From: Kudoa neothunni
Lineage: Eukaryota; Animalia; Cnidaria
Direction: 5' to 3'
DNA length: 64,000 nt
Assembly: GCA_964304625.1 (NCBI GenBank)
Contig: OZ199838.1
Coordinates: 1,777,927-1,841,926 of the forward strand
Shown: in pieces, positions 8,742-57,147 of the stretch
Position numbering within the stretch: the first letter of the stretch is position 1
How the letters are laid out: every line of letters starts with the position of its first letter
Notes under the pieces: model-generated
The model's database searches: none
What the model was told of the DNA's origin: nothing
The model's input: only the letters and a program-made list of their open reading frames with translations
Made by a program: the position numbers and the translations under genes

Positions 8742-9471
8742 TTTTTTTATGATTTTTATGGCCGATATTATGAAATTTTTTGCGTTATTAAATGATTAGA
8801 ATCCATTAATATAATTTACTATAAATTGTATTTTTCAGTTTATTGTATTTTTGTAATTTTTCTCATTTATTTTTTTGAACTAAATTTGCCTTTAATAAAG
8901 AGTTAATAAACATAACTTACTAAATTAATTCTTTCGTAGTAGATTTCAACGTTATTATTATTATTTTTCGAGAAGCAACGACAACTTTTTACATCAACCC
9001 TAGTTCAAAATTTTGTCATTATTTTTCTGTAGCTTCGATTTATTTAGTCAGTTGTTTGAAAAATGACTAAATTCACAATAAAAATTCGGGATTGATCACA
9101 ATTTTTGAATTTGCGTAACATAATAGCGATTTACAACAAAATCTAGTTATTAATCTGGAATATCTTTAATTCCTTGATAAAAATTATTTATTTAATTCCT
9201 GCTAAACTTTCCCTTTTAAAAAATTACTTTATTTCTGTAGTTTACTACCATAGATACGTTGAACTATGTTATCCTATTTATATATAAAATACATTTTAGA
9301 GAAATTAGGAGAATTCAAGAAAAATTTATTTATAACGATGATGTAAAAATTCCATACGATCTAAGGCTAGAAAATAAGTTTATTTTTGTATAATTGAATA
9401 AACAATTGTTTCCGATAATAAATACTATTCGTTAAAATATAATCCAATTTATATTTTGCTGAACTATTGTT

Positions 9472-12400
9472 ATGATGAATATAGCTAAAGGTGGTGTTTT
9501 CTTCTACTTTATACGTAAATAACATAAATTAATTCGTATTTAAAATAAAATTCAGTTTGTGTGCTAAAAAACTACCATGTTAATGCCACCCAGGAAAAAA
9601 CTACCCCGGATAAACTAATTTACCAAATTATTAAAGATATTGATGGAACAAATAAAGTGAAATTAAATCTTAGTGGTACAAACTATGGTGTTACTAGCAA
9701 CAAATGCCGCATAATGAGATCTAACGAGGCTGAAATCGCGGTAACTGATACTACACCAGCTGATTTTAAAGAAATCGATAATTGCTCGGCCAATGAAATT
9801 TCTGTTGGCAGTAACCAATGTGTAATTACATGTGGAACTGATGAAAATAAGCTAACGTACGATAAACTGTCTCCGAGAACTAAATACATATACGTATTTG
9901 TGGGTACTGTTGTAGATACTATCAAAGGGGAAGAACAGAAAAAAGGAGGAAAAGTGTTTGGTTACTCGATACGTAAGTTTATATAACCAATAACAACTTT
10001 TGTGAATTAAGTTTAGCGTTGATGGTGAATCCTCAAGTTACTGTAACTACAGATACAAATAAAAAACTGAAATTATCAACGATATCATGTCCTAATGTGA
10101 ATTGTCCCATTTATTATAAGGATATCCAGTATGTAATTGGAACAAAGGGAACCGATTGCAATACAGCAAATTCAGCGAATGAAGTTGAATTTGACTTGTT
10201 GTTACCTCATTATGAAATGAGATGCCAAAATTATCCAAGTTACTTTTACAATATGCCAAATGAATACATGAAAAAAAAATATTGAGATTTATAAACCACA
10301 GTTTTATGCTGCTACCAAAGAAGGAAACAAAGTAGAGATAAAGTTCACAAATTCACTCTCTTCTGAGATATGTCTCTTCAGTCTCAAAAGTGGTCTGGTT
10401 GCAGATGCTTCTACACAGTACAAGTCAATTTGTGGTGATGTAAATAAGAGTTGTTATGCACCCTGTAAAGATGTTGTTTTGGATGGTATTGAAAATAAAA
10501 GAATTTATAAAATATTAATCCAAACAAGACATCACGATATAACAGTAACTGGTACCAGCCCAGATGGTTACATTCAATATAAATTTGGTAATTATAAGTA
10601 ATATATTTTGATATTGTTATTATTGTATATAGCAAACACGGAACCAACTGGAGGTTTACTATCGGTCTACACGTCTAAAGGTGTCACATTTGATGCAACA
10701 CACTTTAAACCATCTAACGATTCAAAATTTGAAAAGTGTACTCTAAAACATTATCTAGCAGACAAGCCTAAGCCATCCTCACTTACTGATACGAAATGTG
10801 AAAATGGCAGTTCAAAAGGTGATAGCGATAACAAATGCAAGGATGATTGCAGTAAATTGGTTACAAAAGATCTGAAGGCTGGAAAAGCCTATATTATTGA
10901 AATTCAAGAACACGGAATAAGTGACGCAAATGGTTTTCAAGAACAGATATTTATAAGAACAAGTAAATTTCTAATATTATAAACTTAACTATTGTTATGT
11001 AGAAAAAATATCTGGTAAAGATTTTCAAACTACTCTCCCAACAAAGACTGATAAAAATGCTTCTCTAACAGCTATTGGAGGGTCGGTGCCGGATGATAGA
11101 AAAACCGAAGCAACTTGTGAATATTTGGTGAGTCCTGCAGGAAAGGATAGTTTCTATCCTGCCAAGTGTGCTAGCAGCAATCCATGTAGAGGTTTGTGTA
11201 GAGATCAAGTAACGATAGAAGACCTTGAACCAAACACATCTTATGATATCAGAGTAATCGCAGATAAAGATTATGAAATGATAGATCATAAAAATGTTCA
11301 AACAAGTAATTTGTTTAATATTTAGCCCAATTAATTTTATCTAGCTTTAACAACATTGGTCATATCTCACAAGGTCAAACCGGAAGGTTTGTTTGTGAAT
11401 GCACAATTATCTGCAGGGGATCCCAATACAAAATGCAGTTATATTGTAAAAGTGAAGAAGGAAAATGACTACACGGATGTTTACACTTGCCCCGCAGTGA
11501 CGGCAGTTCCAGTACCTACAATTACTAATGTACCAGCAGCTCCTCAACCATCGTCTTCGATGATACGTTCAAGCAATAGAAAATCAAATATTGCTAGAGC
11601 TGTGCTATCTACACATGCAAGTGATAATACTTCATTGGAACAAAACCAATCAGGAGGCGAATCTACACAGTCTTCTGGTGTTACTAATAGCATAGGCACA
11701 ACGTCAAACACATGTTCAGCCAATCCTTTGTGCAGTTCCATCATCTTCACTGGGTATGATGCAACAAACGAATATAAACTATTAGTAACAGCGATTGGAA
11801 AATCTTCAGAAAAAGATTTTTCTTTAGAGCCAAGTATCAAAAATCTAAATTTTTTAAATTTTACATATTTGAGGAATTTATTTTCGAAATTTTACATTTC
11901 GTTAGGTGCACCGAAAGGTAATCCCACTGATTCCTCTAAAGTAATAACAGTCATTATCACACGTGATGGGGACAGTTTCATCATAACTAACGGACTTCCA
12001 GCCAATATGGACGATAAATCAAAATGTAAATGGGAGTTACGAAACAGTAGTCTTATGTCGAGGGCGATAATAAAGTCTTGCATGGGACGGAGAGTAGATG
12101 GATGTTCTTCGTTCGTAACTTGCAAAGAATTCACAATAGAAGGTCTACCCGATGGAAATAACTATTACTTGACAGTTTACAGTGCGAAAGATCCAACGGT
12201 TTTCGGTACTGCAGATATACAACAAGGTACATTTATTGATAATTAAATAAATAATTAATTTAATTTGTTTAGGAGCCAAGAGCAGTTCAAGGTATGGTTA
12301 ATATGACACCATTATTTATCTTAATATATTTTTAGTGGAAACATAAAGCTTATGTAAAAATTATAAACTTAGTTCGTTGAAATAAGTTATATTTAGAATC

Positions 12401-12475
12401 ATTATAGTGTCAGCTATTGGTGCTTTAGTGGTAGTAATAGTTGGAGGGGTTATGTTAAAGAAGAAACGTGATTAA
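9472..12475 (+). CDS. Novel type I membrane protein (~862 aa): signal peptide, ~7 Cys-containing fibronectin type III-like modules, TM helix, 5-aa tail
   Basis: Exons 9472-9514, 9556-9972, 10017-10587 (one extra A in the run at 10271-10279), 10633-10962, 11003-11305, 11345-11833, 11906-12226, 12273-12291, 12336-12353 and 12397-12475 join in frame through GT-AG introns. N-terminus MMNIAKGGVFFYFILCVLKNYHVNA; FN3 signatures VTIEDLEPNTSYDIRVIA, LTYDKLSPRTKY and FTIEGLPDGNNYYLTV; C-terminus IIIIVSAIGALVVVIVGGVMLKKKRD*. Confidence 0.85.
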
Positions 12476-36141: not shown

Positions 36142-37362
36142 ATCAGCTAATAACACATTAGAACTCACTAAATACGAGGAAAACAATAATAAGAAGGCGA
36201 TCATGTGATAGATTATATGAACAACGTTAGGATTAAATGTAAAGAACAGTCAAACGCTAGAAATGAAAATTTGTGATTAATTTTTATATGCTATAACTTT
36301 TCAAATAATGATATAGATAATAATGAAAAAATTAATTAATAATAAGCACAAAATCATAACAAATTTTGGTAGCGAGTAAGTATATCCTTACCGCTCATAA
36401 TATCTAATTGAATAAGCCCTTCCACAGAAGTTTAATTAATCTACCGCGATTCATCGAGCGACTTCGGAATCCGCGGCATTAAAGCCAATAATTCTAATAT
36501 CCACGTATATTATTTAAATCCTAAAATTTTCATAATTAAACAAACTAAACATCAAACCGACAATAAAATCTATCATAATTTCATGCAGAAATATGACTAT
36601 CATTTTAACGCACACATTATAAAGTGAATGCAAATTCGCCGACTGTTATCGTATAAGAATCACTGAAAAGTCATTTTTAAATTGTAATTTATTCCGTCAC
36701 ATTTAACTAATTATAACTTTAGAGTCCGTTAGCTTCTTACTTGATTCCATGGTAATTAAGAATAAGTATGAAAACCCCTTAGTGAATAATGTTTAATGTG
36801 TCACTCAATCCTACTAATACTCTAGGAGTGCCCAAAGGCGGATAAATACAGAACACAATGAATCACAAAGAAACTATTGGCCAAGGTATAATATGGAATA
36901 ACTTTTCTGTTGTTCAGCAATTAATGTACAGTATGTAGATAACAATTGCAGCTTAGATACCATACAATCTAAAGATTAAGTTAATGTTAGGAATAAATAT
37001 GGACTTAACATTTTGAAACAAATAGCGTCTCAAATTAATCATATCCACGGTAATTAAGGCTTAATTATACTAAGTACATTGTTGTGAGTATTAATAATTA
37101 TAAATTTTGTATAGAATACACAAAAAATTGATTACAATATCTTTGGAAAAATAGGACCAATGGTTGCTCAAAAAACTCAATCACATAAACTCGACAAATA
37201 TCAAACCGATGAAGTCGTTAAAAATCGTGCAGCAATCGTAATCCGTTTTCAGTATTAGTTGGCGTGTCGCAATTGAGCGAGACATGAGAAGTGCTTTTTC
37301 TATTGATCTTATTGCAACACGCTAGACTTTTATATTTAGCCCATCCAACCAATCCCAACCTA

Positions 37363-40300
37363 ATGGATGATGAGAATGAATATGAACGCGGCTCCACACC
37401 ACAACAATATGAAAATAGCCAACTAATCTTAACTAATAATATAGAGAGTGTAATCTCCGAGTCGGATTCTGAAAGTAATTTAGTTGGTGCATGTATTTGT
37501 TGTGGTTTTGTTTGTGTATCAATTTCAATATTACATAGGTTCCATGAACAACTTGGATGTGGTAGATCTCCACAACAATGGTATCAATATAACGCAATTA
37601 CATTCGTTGATCAATCCGAAATTGACCAAAGGAAACACCTAGTAATGATTTCTCTCAATATCAAACTATATTTATATGTTAATTTAAATGTGTATCTAGT
37701 TATGTGTTATCTCGAAGTTGGTATTCAAAATGGGAGACCAGCTACAGAAATAGAAACCAAATTCTCCCAAACTGTGACAAAGAATTCATCGATAACAGTG
37801 ACATACTCGATCCCAACAATAAACACCTACTTCAAGCAAACCTAAAACAAACTCGTTTTATTTATTTGGACGAAGATGCGTGGGCAAAATTAAGCAATTT
37901 TTGTTCAGTGATACCTGGCCAATTGTCAATAAAGCGAAAAGCGATTGAAGCCAGTTTGGATCACAATCTAACTATATTGGAGTTGTATCCATGTTTTGTT
38001 AAGTTGTGTGTGGATCACAACCCCACCGAAGTAGTAGAAATAGTGGTGAGTAAAAGTGAGCGCCTAATCTCACTCTACCATCAATCTATGGAGATGTTTA
38101 AACTGGATCCACCAAGTGACAACAATCACAATCAAGTGACTTTGTGGTTGATTGAGGATGCGGGATTAAAATGGAGAAAAATCGATTCAACCTCTGATTC
38201 TTACGTGGCTCAACTGTTACAACCCACCGAAAGAGTTGCACCTTCCGTTACCTTGACAGTTGTTATCACCCTTAACAGTGAACCTCCCAAAAATGGCATA
38301 TGTGCTTTCAGTGTTGTTGTGGAGAATAGTTGGAAACCCCACCCTAAAACTCTATCCAAATCATCGCTCTCGCTGTCGCCGTTACCCTTCCAAGCCACGC
38401 GATCTCACATTTCTGGTAATGTGGGGTTGCAAAATCTTGGCAACACTTGTTATATGAATTCGGCTATTCAGTGTCTTTCTCATGCCATGTGTTTGACTCA
38501 ATATTTTTTGGGTGATATTAATGGTGGTGTGATTTGATTGTTGAGCTGTCATTTGTCATTAGATGACAAGCACTTATCTGAAGTGAACGAGATGAATCCC
38601 CTTGGAGCTAATGGCAATCTCGCGCGCGCATATGGAAACTTAATTAAAAAATTATGGCAGACAAACTGCGACTCAACTTGGCCATGCTTCTCACCAAACG
38701 AAATGAAATACACCATTGGCCTATTCTCATCGCAGTTTGCTGGCTATGGGCAACAGGATTCCCAAGAATTGTTGGTTACTCTTCTGGATGGTTTGCATGA
38801 GGATCTCAATCGAGTGAGGCGTAAACCATACATTGAGTTGACTGATGTCACCCATAAACCGCTGGATGAGGGAGCACTACTCGCATGGAATGTACACAAA
38901 GCTAGAAATGATTCGATTGTGGTGGACAATTTTCACGGTCAACTTCGATCGACGATCCAATGTCCATCTTGTCATACTGTAGGTTTGAGTTGAACTTTAG
39001 CTTTTGTTTCTAATGACTAATTGAAAATGTCTAATTTATCAGTTATAATGACCAATTTAGGTATCGGTGACCTTCGACCCTTTCGTATGCTTATCGTTAC
39101 CGTTGCCAGCGTTGTCAGATGTTAAAATTATCGTGTCAGTAACCCCATATGATATAAACAAGAGTGTCAAAATCGTATTTTTATCCGCCATCTTTTATAA
39201 CGACATTTGAGTATTTAGTACAAATTCAAAGCACCCATCGGATGCTCCACGAGAAACATTGCCGATTTTGTGAAAGAACGCGTTGGACTAACTCATGACA
39301 ATGTTATTCGCTATTGATTTTTGGCGCGTGTGTGATTCGACTGATTCTCTTTAGTATTTTGTACATCCTCAGTATTCGTCAGCCGTCGTGTTGTTGTCTG
39401 TGTTCCCTACGTTGAATATCGACCTGAAATCTTTGACCAAAATAGATTTGTAATCTAGTTGAGTGTAATTTGTCTAAATTGGATGAATTTTTTAGCTTTG
39501 AGTTTGATCCTTCGTTTACCGTCGATGATGTTCGCGCCGATCCGTTTCGTTGCCGCTGGGCACTTATTAGACATAATGTTTCGAATGAAACGTATTACGC
39601 GTGAGAAAGAAGTATGGGGTTTAATCTATTTTAGCTGTTTTGGAAGTCGACTCTTCCCGAATTCGATGCTCGTCCCTTTACCTAATGGTTTTGTCGCTGG
39701 TGTGAACAAGCCTTTAAATGTTCAGATTATTTACAATTCGGTTGTGAATAGATTGAGGTTTTTTAATTTGTTGATATTTATTTTTATATCTATATCGATT
39801 TTAGGGAATTTTTAGAAAAACACAAAAACACAGCTGCTTTTAACTCTATGCCCTTGACGAACAATCTACAAATGTCCAACGAAAGTAAATCCTTTTAATC
39901 TGCTATGCGGTTTTTATAGTTTTTCAATTAGATGAAAATCATGTCTCACCCGCAACAGTATATTTTTGTTTAGTCGTTGTTGGTTGATGTTGACTTGGGC
40001 TGCTGAGCTAAGATTTTGTATAATTTATTTTTGCGCTAAATTATATGCGATGCTCTTTTATTTTAATATTTTATTCGCGTGCTAATCATTATTCCTTAAT
40101 TCCTTACAATGTATCAAATTCTGACAATGTAATTGGTCTTTTGTATTATATTTCTACTTTTAAATTAAATTTGTTGGCGGATAATATTGTCTTGTCACAC
40201 AATTAAATTATTTATCTTAGCTAATATCGGCTTCAACCAACAATGTCTAATTACTGTTTAATTGATTAATTATTTGATGATTTAATTGCGTATTAGACCA

Positions 40301-44589: not shown

Positions 44590-45659
44590 GTTGAACATAC
44601 GTTTTCTAGTGGACTATGGATTATCGGATTTGAGTATATAATGTATTTTTATACCCTTATTTGAATAAATTTGTTTAACGTCTGGCAAATTCCTGACGGT
44701 GTTGTCGCTGGTCTTGTGGAGGAAGCTGTCGATGTAGGCTATAAACACCTTGATTGTGCATTGGTTTATCGGAACGAATACGCGTTAGGTCACGAGTACC
44801 TTTCCACCATAAAAAGCAGGGATCAACTGTTTATCACGTCAAAACTTTGGTCCATCCTCCACCAACCAGAGTTGGCAAAGGACTTCAACAAACCCTTTCA
44901 GACTTGTGTCCTGACTACCTTGATCTTTATTCAGTCCACGCTCCTGTTCTATGTGATTAAAATACTTCCAGCATGTTTGTTATTCAATATTTTAAACAAG
45001 AATGGATCGCTGAAACATGACATGCCATGGAAAAACTCTACGAAAATGGAAAATGCAAATCCATCGGTGTAAGTAATTTTTCCACCACAAAACTGCAATG
45101 GCTTATTGAAGAGGCTTCCATTGTGCCACATGTTAACCAAGGTTTTTTGTAATCTGCCAATGATATGAGCTTTTAAGTCAAATTAGTGGAGTTACACCCG
45201 TATTTGCCTCAAAACAAACTCGTTAAATTTTTCCGAGATCACGAAATCCAAGTTGTTGCCTATTCCCATTCCCCTTTTTGGCTCTCAAACTATTGGTTTC
45301 AGTAAACGGACTGATCCTGCTCTGCTTAAAAATCTCATTGCTGTTAATATTGTTAACATAAATAAAATAACAATAACCCCCACCCAAGTAATTTCCTACA
45401 TCAAGACAATTGGTTCACACTCTTAACCAAATAAGGTGCTCATAGCTTGGAGTATTCAGTGTGGGATACCTGCAGTGGTGAATTCATCGAGCAAAGCTCG
45501 TATGACAGAGAATTTCGCTGCCAAAAATATCACTCTCCCTGATGATGATATGAAGACCCTTTCAAACATGAAGACTCAATGCAGATATCACGATTATGAT
45601 TTGTTCCTAGCTGAGGGAAAACTGTGGATGAATTTTGGGATGGCGAAACATTCAATTAA
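44590..45659 (+). pseudogene. Aldo-keto reductase (AKR1-like), probable pseudogene
   Basis: AVDVGYKHLDCALVYRNE, RDQLFITSKLW, DYLDLYSVHAP, KSIGVSNF, VNQ|VELHPYLPQ, AYS, Q|VLIAWSIQ, EFWDGE. Lesions: TGA at 45018-45020 in place of the conserved Trp of ETWxAME, a first intron with no AG acceptor (tttaac), small deletions and several frameshifts. Confidence 0.75.
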
Positions 45660-46723: not shown

Positions 46724-47479
46724 TTAGGTAGGCCTAAGGAAGTTCGGATTGGTAGACAATTTACTAATTATCATATTGAACCATTTATTTAGGCAATCCA
46801 AAGGGATCCATATTTTTTGACTGTCTTCGGGAGAGAAGGCATTGGTGGCTATTTTGTTAGGGGTTATAGAATAGGAAGATGCGTAATTGTAAAAATTCTC
46901 CAGAAGATTTTGAATTTGATTCAATTTTTTTTCATTTCCGGTATTGCTCGAATTGGTGTTGTTATCCCCACTGCTGGCAGCTACTTTGGCTTGAATTTCA
47001 GCGATCGACTCGTGCTCGAAATATAAAAATGCGGTAGTTTGTGGGAGAAATTCAGAGTTGGCATAAGCTGTAGATACTGCAACCTGTAATCCTTGTTGAT
47101 AGGAATCCATGTTTTTAATCTAATATTAATGCGAATAAGAATTATTAAGATGAACGAATATTCGAGAGAACTTGATTTAAGCGGAAAAATGCGCTGGGCT
47201 TTTGATTCGACAAGAATCCCATGTATATAAAGTTGTTTTTGTTAATTTCGGTAGTTGGGAATGATATATAAACTGCAGTGGCTAGGCCTTCTTGATGTGC
47301 CATCGTTCCAGTTAAAAATACTGCCAAACTATTGACTTCGTGATAATTTGGAAGGCACATCAGACAATGAGTGTCATCGATAATTTTTATATCGGTGCAT
47401 ACCTATTTAATTGTCTTAGATCACAAAAGTAGGCCAACTACAGTTTTACAAGTCTTCCTGGAGCAACGTATCCGTACAT
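46724..47479 (-). CDS. HIKESHI: Hikeshi/OPI10 family (Hsp70 nuclear import carrier), 3 exons
   Basis: MYGYVAPGRL|VCTD...LPNYHEVNSLAVFLTGT...AVYISFP...MGFLSNQKPSAFFRL; LLENFYNYASS; IPLDCLNKWF..KLSTNPNF. Confidence 0.9.
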
Positions 47480-55432: not shown

Positions 55433-57147
55433 TTAGACTTCAAAATGAGTCACATGTATTCCAATATTTAATCCATAGAAAAGCTTTTGCCATCGTTGCA
55501 AATAAGCTATTTGAATTGTATGAATGGGTTTGTCTAGTGTTTCTTCGACAATCACAGCAGCAAATATAGAACTAATAAGATTGATCACGGTGAATAGGTA
55601 GAATGTACGCATAATGAGATTGGTCTAAAAGAATGATGAATGAATATGGTGGGCGGCAAAATTAACATTTTCACGGAGAAAAATGTACATATAGGGTTGG
55701 TAAAAATAGATAAACAATGGAATCTCCAATCCAACAAAACATCGACAAAAATCCTTGGGCAGTAGCCAAATAATTCGAAGGGAAAATTTCCTCTGAGATA
55801 TACCATGTGGTTGGCCCTTTTGACATAAAAAGCTTAGAAATGAGGCTACTGAGTAAAGCTTTAATCTTCTTACCTATACCCACCTGAAACACACAAACAA
55901 ATAGAGAAATAAGAGCCAAATAGGTTTCATATTGTACATCCCACACATAACAGATTGAAGTTGATGCACAAACGATGGTTAGTAACGCGAATGATAGTTC
56001 GACCTGTATTTTTCTTTCAGCAAACACATTCCATACATACTAGATAAAGATTGAAGAGTAGATCGAATATTTGGCAACGTGTTAAATCAAAAATAGGAAC
56101 TTACAAAAAAGAGCGAACTCATTAATGCAACCACTCCAACAATGATAGCAATGTATTTTTCGGTAGGAGAATCTTTCACATCGTCCCCGAAATATCGAGT
56201 GAAACCAATGATTGCGTTGATACCTGAAGCGTGCTTTAGAAAACACACTATACACCAACTGGCCACTGAAGCAAGTGACCGTTTGTTAGAGAGAAATTTC
56301 CTGATGGAGATTTCAGTGGAGTCTTTTTGTTCTTCTATCCCACTAACTACACGATCCAATTCCATGACAACGTAGGCATAGCCACGTAGTTTCAACAGAG
56401 CATCTCTAGTTAGCTCTTTATCTCTGGTGAAAACATAGATGTACTTGTGGCTTTCAAACACATAAAACGTTATTAAAGTTAGTAGCACTCCGAAAGCTAT
56501 AGGCACAAAACACAATAAATACCAACTTTCGCCAGCGTTTAGCATTACATCCGCCACATTTATAATTAATATACCCGCATTTATAGAAACTTGGATCAAT
56601 ATTTTGTAGTATTTTAATATTTGGGTTGGAATAATTTCCATTAGCCACACAGTCGAAGACACTATAAGGAGACTAACTGCGAATCCGTCAACAGCTCTCG
56701 AAAAGTAGAATAAAGCCAACGAAGTTTTGTAAGAAAAAATTTTAAAACAACTAGATATTATAACCAATTGGGTTGAAAACATTGTAGTATACCGTCTAGA
56801 CAAATTAAACTTAGCTCACTTAAATTAATCTACCTTCCAAAACTATTTGTTGCTATCGCGCCAAATAACGAACCAAAGATACCGAATATAGGAAAAAGAC
56901 TGTTTAACGTGTAGAGCTTGTCAGCTTGTTCCGTTGGAATACTGAATGTTTTCCCTATTCTCTAGTTGGAAATAGTTACAATTAAAAATTACGATCAACT
57001 CACAAATAGATAATACAGATAAATCATTCCCGCTTGATATTTTGATACCCATAAGGAACGGGCCCAGTAGCAGGAATGAAATGCATACTAAACCTGTTTT
57101 CGACTGTTTACTGTCTTCAGTTTTCGAAGAATTGTCGCGTTTATCAT
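55433..57147 (-). CDS. Divergent SLC2/GLUT-family sugar porter
   Basis: LNSLFPIFGIFGSLFG..NSFGR|R; SRAVDG; WLMEIIP; ESHKYIY; ALLKLRG; KHASGINAI; GPTTWYISEEIFP; EETLDKPI. These are degenerate forms of the GLUT motifs FGRR, EISP, PESPRY, QQLSGINA, GPIPW..AELF and PETKG. Start inferred across one frameshift. Confidence 0.85.

Follow-up and report, generated by a model that had tools for sequence, protein, structure and literature searches.

A predicted membrane protein with four-cysteine FN3-like modules from a large gene family of Kudoa neothunni

Introduction

Fibronectin type III (FN3) domains (Pfam PF00041) form the canonical arrays of contactin, NCAM2, Dscam, titin and fibronectin, and these arrays are the closest described systems to the gene reported here. 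The gene occupies positions 9472-12475 of the plus strand in a stretch of 64,000 nucleotides of the genome of the cnidarian parasite Kudoa neothunni (hereafter the window; contig OZ199838.1 of assembly GCA_964304625.1, positions 1,777,927 to 1,841,926). It is a gene for a predicted type I membrane protein, with seven modules numbered M1 (membrane-distal) to M7 (membrane-proximal). With canonical arrays it shares head-to-tail modules on phase-1 exons, the type I membrane topology, a predicted seven-strand sandwich in M5 and the Leu...Tyr motif of the E-F loop and F strand, which is kept in M5, M7 and M3. It differs from them in its four invariant cysteines per module, its near lack of tryptophan, an M5 that stays below the Pfam cut-off and a cytoplasmic tail of five residues, and in belonging to what may be a lineage-specific expansion of several hundred members.

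Four conserved cysteines are also known from an FN3 domain of class I cytokine receptors. Their homology module (N-terminal FN3 with two conserved disulfides) and the Kudoa protein are alike in placing an FN3-type sandwich with four cysteines in a type I membrane protein, whereas the Kudoa cysteine spacing is other, there is neither a WSxWS partner domain nor a Box1/Box2 tail, and no sequence match connects the two.

A further comparison is with the multigene surface families of protozoan parasites, namely the apicomplexan 6-Cys and SRS families and the VSPs of Giardia. The likeness lies in large copy number, arrays partly near chromosome ends, mosaics made by gene conversion, cysteine-stabilised ectodomains and a tiny cytoplasmic tail; the difference is that Kudoa is an animal, that its module appears to be FN3-derived, and that it has no Pfam match to the 6-Cys, SRS or VSP families. 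Fish diseases due to myxozoans are costly, and Kudoa ruins fillets of tuna and of other fish; to our knowledge almost nothing is known about myxozoan surface molecules. Candidate variable surface families in a myxozoan are described in a preprint on Sphaerospora molnari, where they are VSP-like and RIFIN/STEVOR-like (bioRxiv 10.64898/2026.02.11.705288). Those families comprise CXXC-rich VSP-type and Plasmodium-like proteins, whereas the Kudoa family has a different predicted fold, and the preprint does not mention fibronectin or FN3 (bioRxiv 10.64898/2026.02.11.705288).

We think it probable that the window gene is an intact, selected gene for a membrane-anchored rod of seven modules, that it belongs to a large lineage-specific family recombining in module-sized pieces, and that the products are variable surface adhesins or decoys. 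By analogy with the protozoan families, this would place an FN3-derived module within a parasite-type multigene surface family.

Gene model and the exon 3 frameshift

Gene model. The model was derived from the sequence, its three-frame translation and comparison with paralogs, and by arithmetic has 10 exons and 862 codons when exon 3 is counted at 570 nt. All nine introns are GT..AG, with lengths of 41, 44, 45, 40, 39, 72, 46, 44 and 43 nt; introns 1-7 are in phase 1 and introns 8-9 in phase 2. A preliminary description of the stretch had proposed a protein of about 862 amino acids with a signal peptide and a transmembrane segment, phase-1 introns throughout from the signal exon to the last module, and module exons of 417, 570 (after correction), 330, 303, 489 and 321 nt, and each of these proposals agrees with the model, in which a signal-like start and a membrane span are both found. 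The signal sequence is assigned from the hydrophobic run GGVFFYFI in exon 1, prolonged by L-C-V-L in exon 2.

Frameshift. As assembled, exon 3 changes frame at a run of nine A residues (10271-10279). One A fewer, at 10271, is found in all covering Logan contigs from two DNA runs of the source sample, that is, in two contigs of run X1 (depth 21.6 of 21.6) and one contig of run X2 (16.5 of 16.5); a 214-nt contig among them is otherwise identical to the window copy. Since these contigs span introns, they derive from DNA. A further DNA run, X9, gave no match to the gene. Three full-length paralogs have A8 at the same run. The assembly was built from HiFi reads at ~7x k-mer coverage (bioRxiv 10.1101/2024.11.01.621499), at which homopolymer errors are expected. 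We conclude that the frameshift was introduced by the assembly and that the gene itself is intact, so that the proposed correction of exon 3 to 570 nt stands. An intron that would repair the frame was considered and rejected, because the only GT candidates (10201 and 10239) do not match the AG acceptors (10286 and 10301) in phase.

Other single-base indels and joints. Frames are broken by single-base indels in two paralogs, L012 (a homopolymer in M3, near the equivalent of window position 10522) and L024 (an extra C in the membrane-span exon); both resemble the error in the window gene. Gene predictions for the family on the current assembly will be wrongly broken by such indels, and in an annotation that was based on protein hints at ~7x coverage, as the published one is, family members are likely to be missing, repeat-masked or broken by homopolymer errors. 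One X1 contig joins 10967 to 11116, skipping 148 bases with TT..CT ends and with 20 letters on the shorter side; this joint does not represent splicing and probably arose as an artefact of the assembly graph between paralogs.

Family size, layout and reach

Searches. The genome searched consists of 4 contigs (40.26 Mb), labelled C1 (17.15 Mb), C2 (12.04 Mb), C3 and so on, and the sequence searches were run on separate exons, one at a time; paralog comparisons cover the ~30 closest loci. The M5 protein query gave at least 150 scored matches from 461 first-look candidates; each of the 150 listed has E < 5e-18, and stops occur in only three of them. At least 150 matches (445 candidates) were likewise obtained with an exon-3-type query from another species, and the M7 query yielded 304 candidates. 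Judged by these searches, the family has at least 150 intact copies and possibly 300-460, the counts above 150 being of unscored first-look candidates. The preliminary description had posited a lineage-specific family, and its extent goes far beyond what could be seen from the window. The family may account for several percent of all genes.

Layout. All seven modules were found in 24-29 of the ~30 closest loci, in the same order. Arrays lie at C3:0.05-0.46 Mb (25 of the 150 matches), C1:16.3-16.9 Mb of 17.15 Mb, C2:9.8-10.9 Mb of 12.04 Mb and C3:9.75-10.8 Mb. Several of them are near chromosome ends, while many copies are internal, among them the window gene (C1:1.79 Mb), which is the sole family member in the window; a distant relative lies 30 kb upstream of it.

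Reach. A phmmer search with a 443-residue frame covering M2-M5 against 1.84 billion representative proteins returned 26 matches, all of them short unnamed singletons from ENA/Logan metagenome contigs. Annotated proteomes gave no family match, and the searches found no full-length or named homologue, nor any full-length match to a known conserved receptor family. The Kudoa genome paper makes no mention of fibronectin, surface proteins or gene families (bioRxiv 10.1101/2024.11.01.621499), and a literature search for Kudoa or myxozoa with fibronectin returned nothing relevant. The FN3-array family thus appears to be lineage-specific, as had been proposed, and undescribed.

A 7.3-kb Logan contig from a related organism (L043; run SRR31175926, 1-7256) has a family member adjacent to genes of SNF5/INI1-like and ribosomal S14 type. 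These neighbours have 67-72% DNA identity to C3:1.35-1.39 Mb, where a distance of 41 kb, occupied by three family members, separates the two anchors. The presence of a family member beside matching genes in both organisms indicates that the family predates their split, and the comparison suggests local expansion or rearrangement.

Cysteine pattern and fold of the modules

Cysteine pattern. Each of the seven modules has exactly four cysteines (positions in Table 1). In six of them, M1 and M3-M7, the spacing follows C-x(17-26)-C-x(6-13)-C-x(3-5)-C, the middle interval being 75 in M6, and is followed by an L..P...Y.I.V stretch (Leu...Tyr-x-hydrophobic-x-hydrophobic). M2, in the first half of exon 3, is spaced differently; exon 3 thus combines an atypical module with a typical one. 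The repeated four-cysteine pattern of the preliminary description is accordingly retained for six modules and not for M2, and its allotment of one module to each of five exons and about two to exon 3 is upheld, with exon 3 now resolved as M2 plus M3. The cysteines of M1-M5 and M7 are invariant in alignments of 25-29 paralogs (29 for M1, 25 for the eight cysteines of exon 3, 29 for M4, 27 for M7). The four cysteines of a module may act as a disulfide staple of its sandwich.

Of the hallmark core residues of FN3, Leu and Tyr are present: L74 and Y80 of M5, Y86 of M7 and L65 of M3 are invariant, and Y74 of M3 is found in at least 90% of paralogs. The third, the Trp of strand B, is absent, and the ectodomain contains a single tryptophan in all. 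M7 has 80% mean column identity among 27 paralogs. At the other extreme is a 67-residue insert of M6 (11497-11697), which lies between its second and third cysteines, consists of 39% Ser, Thr and Pro, and shows the lowest conservation of any part across paralogs (35-55% identity beyond a clade of four genes).

Fold. Structure predictions covered M5, with an alignment of 28 paralogs, and the exon 3 (M2+M3) of a paralog. The AlphaFold model of M5 has seven strands, with a predicted local distance difference test score (pLDDT) of 81 and a predicted template modelling score (pTM) of 0.73. Its Foldseek matches in PDB are, among those listed, almost all FN3 domains or FN3-derived binders with template modelling (TM) scores of 0.5-0.6, including NCAM2, monobodies, sDscam, EphA2 and neogenin. 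With VIA-align against 48,161 chains, the top 50 are mostly FN3 domains and the FN3 domains of cytokine receptors (Z 8.2-10.1, root-mean-square deviation 2.2-3.5 A over 83-93 residues), and in the ESM Atlas nearly all matches are fn3-bearing clusters (TM 0.62-0.74). At the sequence level, 28 of 28 paralog copies of M5 match Pfam fn3 with E <= 0.1 (best 4.8e-6), below or near threshold; the window copy itself scores 18.0 bits (E 0.0035), short of the curated cut-off of 25 bits. An M5 profile searched against PDB finds titin (4.4e-5) and NCAM2 (6.8e-4). On the predicted fold, the structure matches and the Pfam and PDB profile matches, we assign M5 as a divergent true FN3 domain. The modules had been called unrecognised and FN3-like. 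The first term is overstated for M5 and holds for the others; the second is firm for M5, in sequence and in predicted fold, and more tentative elsewhere.

For M7 there is a weak titin FN3 match in the PDB profile search (E 0.026), and its nearest language-model clusters are fn3 (0.80); for M1 there are faint NDNF-FN3 matches in 5 of 29 copies. The low-confidence model of M2+M3 shows 7+7 strands, and its matches are generic Ig-like and FN3-like folds with Z of at most 7.5. M4 and M6 would be classed as FN3-like by their cysteine and motif pattern. Structure prediction and structure searches, which the preliminary description had put forward as a check, have thus given the expected seven-strand sandwich for M5 and generic matches for M2+M3. 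A MAFFT alignment of mixed module fragments to the 443-residue read-through frame was discarded, as it misplaced modules.

Selection and module-scale mosaicism

Selection. Among the four closest genes, the ratio of non-synonymous to synonymous substitution rates (dN/dS) is 0.16-0.63 in every exon. Medians for the modules, which are crude whole-module values from paralog pairs with synonymous divergence (dS) of 0.05-0.6, range from 0.24 to 0.58 and stay below 1 throughout, which answers the proposal that dN/dS be measured. They are highest in the distal M1 and in M4 and lowest in the membrane-proximal M7 (Table 1), and are 4-10 times the Kudoa median of 0.058 (bioRxiv 10.1101/2024.11.01.621499). 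In the paralog comparison no splice site is lost, and indel lengths are multiples of three in exons but not in introns; across the four close paralogs, exon 1 retains its ATG and its GTAAAT donor. The invariant cysteines, the kept splice sites, the exon indels in threes and dN/dS below 1 are more than chance would leave, and on this comparative evidence the gene is judged to be intact and selected.

Mosaicism. The closest relative of a paralog differs from module to module in the identity tables. L024 and L040 are sisters in M1 (support 100), a grouping that approximately unbiased (AU) tests reject in M4 (p 4e-8) and M5 (p 1e-11); conversely, L023 and L024 are sisters in M4 and M5, which is rejected in M1 (p 0.017). 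The tested clades were picked after the identity tables had been viewed, so that these p values are optimistic. For the window gene itself the only sign of mosaicism is a ten-fold difference in dS to its nearest paralog, 0.54 in exon 2 and 0.43 in exon 4 vs 0.04-0.06 in exons 5-7, with introns 4-8 nearly identical. The paralogs are module-scale mosaics produced by gene conversion or recombination. In-frame swapping of modules, as suggested earlier, is therefore seen on an evolutionary scale, in that the AU tests reject a single tree, but not as a shuffling of module order, which is the same in the ~30 paralogs.

Micro-exons, membrane span and tail

The tail region contains two micro-exons, as judged from comparison of paralogs. 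Exons 8 and 9 are ungapped in an alignment of 27 paralogs and measure 19 and 18 nt in the 18 copies that were parsed. In these copies they encode the conserved peptide G-A-K-S-S-S-G-x-K-T-K-L in frame with the membrane-span exon, and the introns flanking exon 9 are 42-48 nt long, like those in the rest of the gene. Across the 27 paralogs, the TTTAG acceptor and GTA donor of exon 9 are conserved, splice signals are retained, and the variation in exons 8 and 9 falls mostly at third codon positions. Two other models were rejected. A 9-exon model with a single intron 8 of 105 nt was replaced, on the paralog alignment, by introns of 44 and 43 nt flanking the 18-nt micro-exon; a nested 'twin intron' would put a stop in the membrane-span frame, and the base that it requires is unconserved in paralogs.

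The layout of exon 10 is common to the 27 paralogs, and their cytoplasmic tails are of 3-5 residues (12460-12475 in the window, and equivalents elsewhere). A five-residue tail implies that the tail itself does no signalling. The basic residues right after the membrane span may be a simple stop-transfer signal, or may cause retention in the endoplasmic reticulum (ER) away from the surface.

Proposed surface role and alternative readings

Proposed role. The product would be a type I membrane glycoprotein, with a signal sequence followed by a rod of seven beta-sandwich modules of ~100 residues each, six of the four-cysteine FN3 type and one (M2) atypical and Ig-like. M6 would contain a mucin-like loop, and the rod would be followed by a short conserved juxtamembrane peptide (encoded by the two micro-exons), one membrane span and a five-residue basic tail. 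Family members would diversify by gene conversion or recombination in module-sized pieces, and the phase-1 introns at every module border would make such recombination frame-safe. The proteins would coat the surface of the parasite (plasmodium, migrating stage or spore) and act at the host interface as variable adhesins or decoys, the four cysteines stapling each sandwich for an extracellular, protease-rich setting. Two features of variant surface-antigen classes are seen here, a large arrayed repertoire often near chromosome ends and mosaic paralogs. The family would be an obvious candidate for studies of host interaction, for diagnostics and for vaccine antigens, and would be a rare example, in an animal parasite, of a repertoire resembling variant antigens.

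Several observations weigh against this proposal. The plasmodia of Kudoa live within muscle fibres, and disulfide-rich ectodomains would there be exposed to reducing cytosol. The gene has no match in contigs of the listed RNA runs, run X10 included, and few RNA reads map to the K. neothunni genome (bioRxiv 10.1101/2024.11.01.621499). The FN3 fold is firm for M5 only and the other modules are weakly supported or less secure: Pfam and PDB sequence searches gave no match for M3 and M4, leaving these two with no sequence link to FN3, and the M2+M3 model is of low confidence (pLDDT 59). Comparisons between module profiles with hhalign are weak (probability <15%), mostly in register around the C-x3-C...L..Y part, and thus say little for homology among the modules. 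No module pair has dN/dS above 1. To these are to be added the choice of AU-tested clades after the event and the unscored part of the family count. Finally, 22 of the 27 paralog tails fit the consensus for ER retrieval by a dilysine motif (K-K-x-x or K-x-K-x-x at the end), which is why the surface exposure of the proteins is something we infer.

A possible role inside the parasite. The last point leads to the main rival, a real though unlikely possibility, in which the protein serves adhesion or recognition between the nested cells of spore formation, forms part of the spore valve, or resides in the ER or Golgi by way of its dilysine tail. Besides those 22 tails (KKxx or KxKxx), dN/dS below 1 throughout would fit such a function, and FN3 arrays are classic metazoan cell-adhesion modules, with contactin, NCAM, Dscam and titin among the structure matches. 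Housekeeping adhesion or spore-wall proteins would not, however, be expected to form hundreds of arrayed paralogs with module-scale gene conversion, nor to evolve at dN/dS values several-fold above the Kudoa median. The fastest-evolving module is moreover the membrane-distal one, and a basic tail beside a membrane span may be a mere stop-transfer signal. We keep to a surface role as the probable one.

Possible antigenic variation. A stronger form of the surface role would be antigenic variation of the protozoan style in an animal, in which several hundred FN3-array genes are continually re-assorted by module-scale gene conversion across phase-1 introns and only one or a few variants are expressed per plasmodium or stage. 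We regard this as rather improbable.

Decay or a known receptor as further alternatives. The view that the locus belongs to a repeat family in decay or is a pseudogene, its open frames being leftovers, is very hard to sustain: the exon 3 frameshift of the assembly, the single-base indels of L012 (M3) and L024 (membrane-span exon) and a genome of which nearly half is called repetitive (bioRxiv 10.1101/2024.11.01.621499) speak for it, but read-derived contigs remove the frameshift, homopolymer errors are expected at such coverage, all but 3 of the 150 listed M5 matches are stop-free, the cysteines and splice sites are invariant, and dN/dS is well below 1. Equally slight is the chance of a diverged member of a known FN3 receptor family (a class I cytokine receptor, or an adhesion receptor of the Dscam, contactin or RPTP type), for which the FN3 fold of M5, the four-cysteine FN3 domain of class I cytokine receptors and the presence of IFNGR, IFNAR1, IL-22BP and gp130 among the structure matches can be cited, but which is contradicted by the absence of WSxWS from all seven modules, the lack of Ig domains and of a cytoplasmic domain (the tail is K-K-K-R-D, with no Box1 or Box2 motif), the different cysteine spacing and the searches, which found no full-length or named homologue.

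Features of the locus and its surroundings

The features of the gene are collected in Table 1. The surrounding DNA is AT-rich (~30% G+C).

Table 1. Coordinates of the window gene and its parts. Positions are those of the window; cysteine positions are counted within each module; dN/dS values are the crude whole-module medians described in the text.
Feature	Position	Strand	Length (nt)	Content	Cysteines	Median dN/dS
Conserved 5' flank	9380..9471	+		Candidate promoter or 5' untranslated region (UTR), directly upstream of ATG		
Exon 1	9472..9514	+	43	Start codon and first 14 codons of signal-peptide-like hydrophobic start; phase-1 intron after		
Exon 2	9556..9972	+	417	End of signal sequence and M1 (membrane-distal, most variable)	50/76/88/92	0.58
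Exon 3	10017..10587	+	571 in assembly, 570 in reads	M2 (atypical Cys spacing) and M3 (typical)	M2 24/29/47/69; M3 29/49/56/60	M2 0.31; M3 0.33
A9 homopolymer in exon 3	10271..10279	+		Breaks frame; true length A8 (read contigs and paralogs)		
Exon 4	10633..10962	+	330	M4, fast-evolving	35/55/68/72	0.58
Exon 5	11003..11305	+	303	M5, divergent FN3 domain with four Cys	38/55/61/65	0.29
Exon 6	11345..11833	+	489	M6 with Ser/Thr/Pro-rich insert	30/48/123/129	0.44
Exon 7	11906..12226	+	321	M7 (membrane-proximal, most conserved)	40/58/66/72	0.24
Exon 8	12273..12291	+	19	Micro-exon (G-A-K-S-S-S)		
Exon 9	12336..12353	+	18	Micro-exon (G-x-K-T-K-L type)		
Exon 10	12397..12475	+	79	Transmembrane helix (~20 hydrophobic residues), tail K-K-K-R-D, stop		

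Four genes of the genome, and no others, share the 5' flank together with exon 1 at 88-96% identity: the window gene and those at C1:3.33 Mb, C2:5.68 Mb and C2:6.99 Mb. Among these four closest paralogs the flank is more conserved than the introns, and it may be a promoter or 5' UTR private to this small clade.

Intron 6 (11834-11905, 72 nt) is in frame and stop-free, so that 11356-12246 reads as one open reading frame (ORF) of 296 residues. The intron is identical in the nearest paralog, and its retention would insert 24 residues between M6 and M7.

The window gene stands alone amid housekeeping genes, outside any array. Neighbouring ORF pieces (279-893, 37291-38993, 44671-45072, 46724-47110 and 56087-56803 of the window) match ordinary genes, namely an MFS transporter, a ubiquitin hydrolase with a DUSP domain, an aldo/keto reductase, Hikeshi and a sugar transporter.

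Some observations concern the genome at large. The contig sets of the runs in which the gene is found are as large as expected of a host, at ~0.83 Gb. The published K. neothunni assembly, from yellowfin tuna, has three chromosome scaffolds, a mitochondrial circle and one TAAACC telomere (bioRxiv 10.1101/2024.11.01.621499); in the assembly searched here, in agreement with this, a telomere-like (TAAACC)n repeat occurs only at C2:12039536-12040069, the end of contig 2. Three tandem nuclear-receptor zinc-finger (zf-C4) exons at C1:10296485-10306767, which mark the genome as that of an animal, are the sole such matches in the genome, a very small set for an animal.

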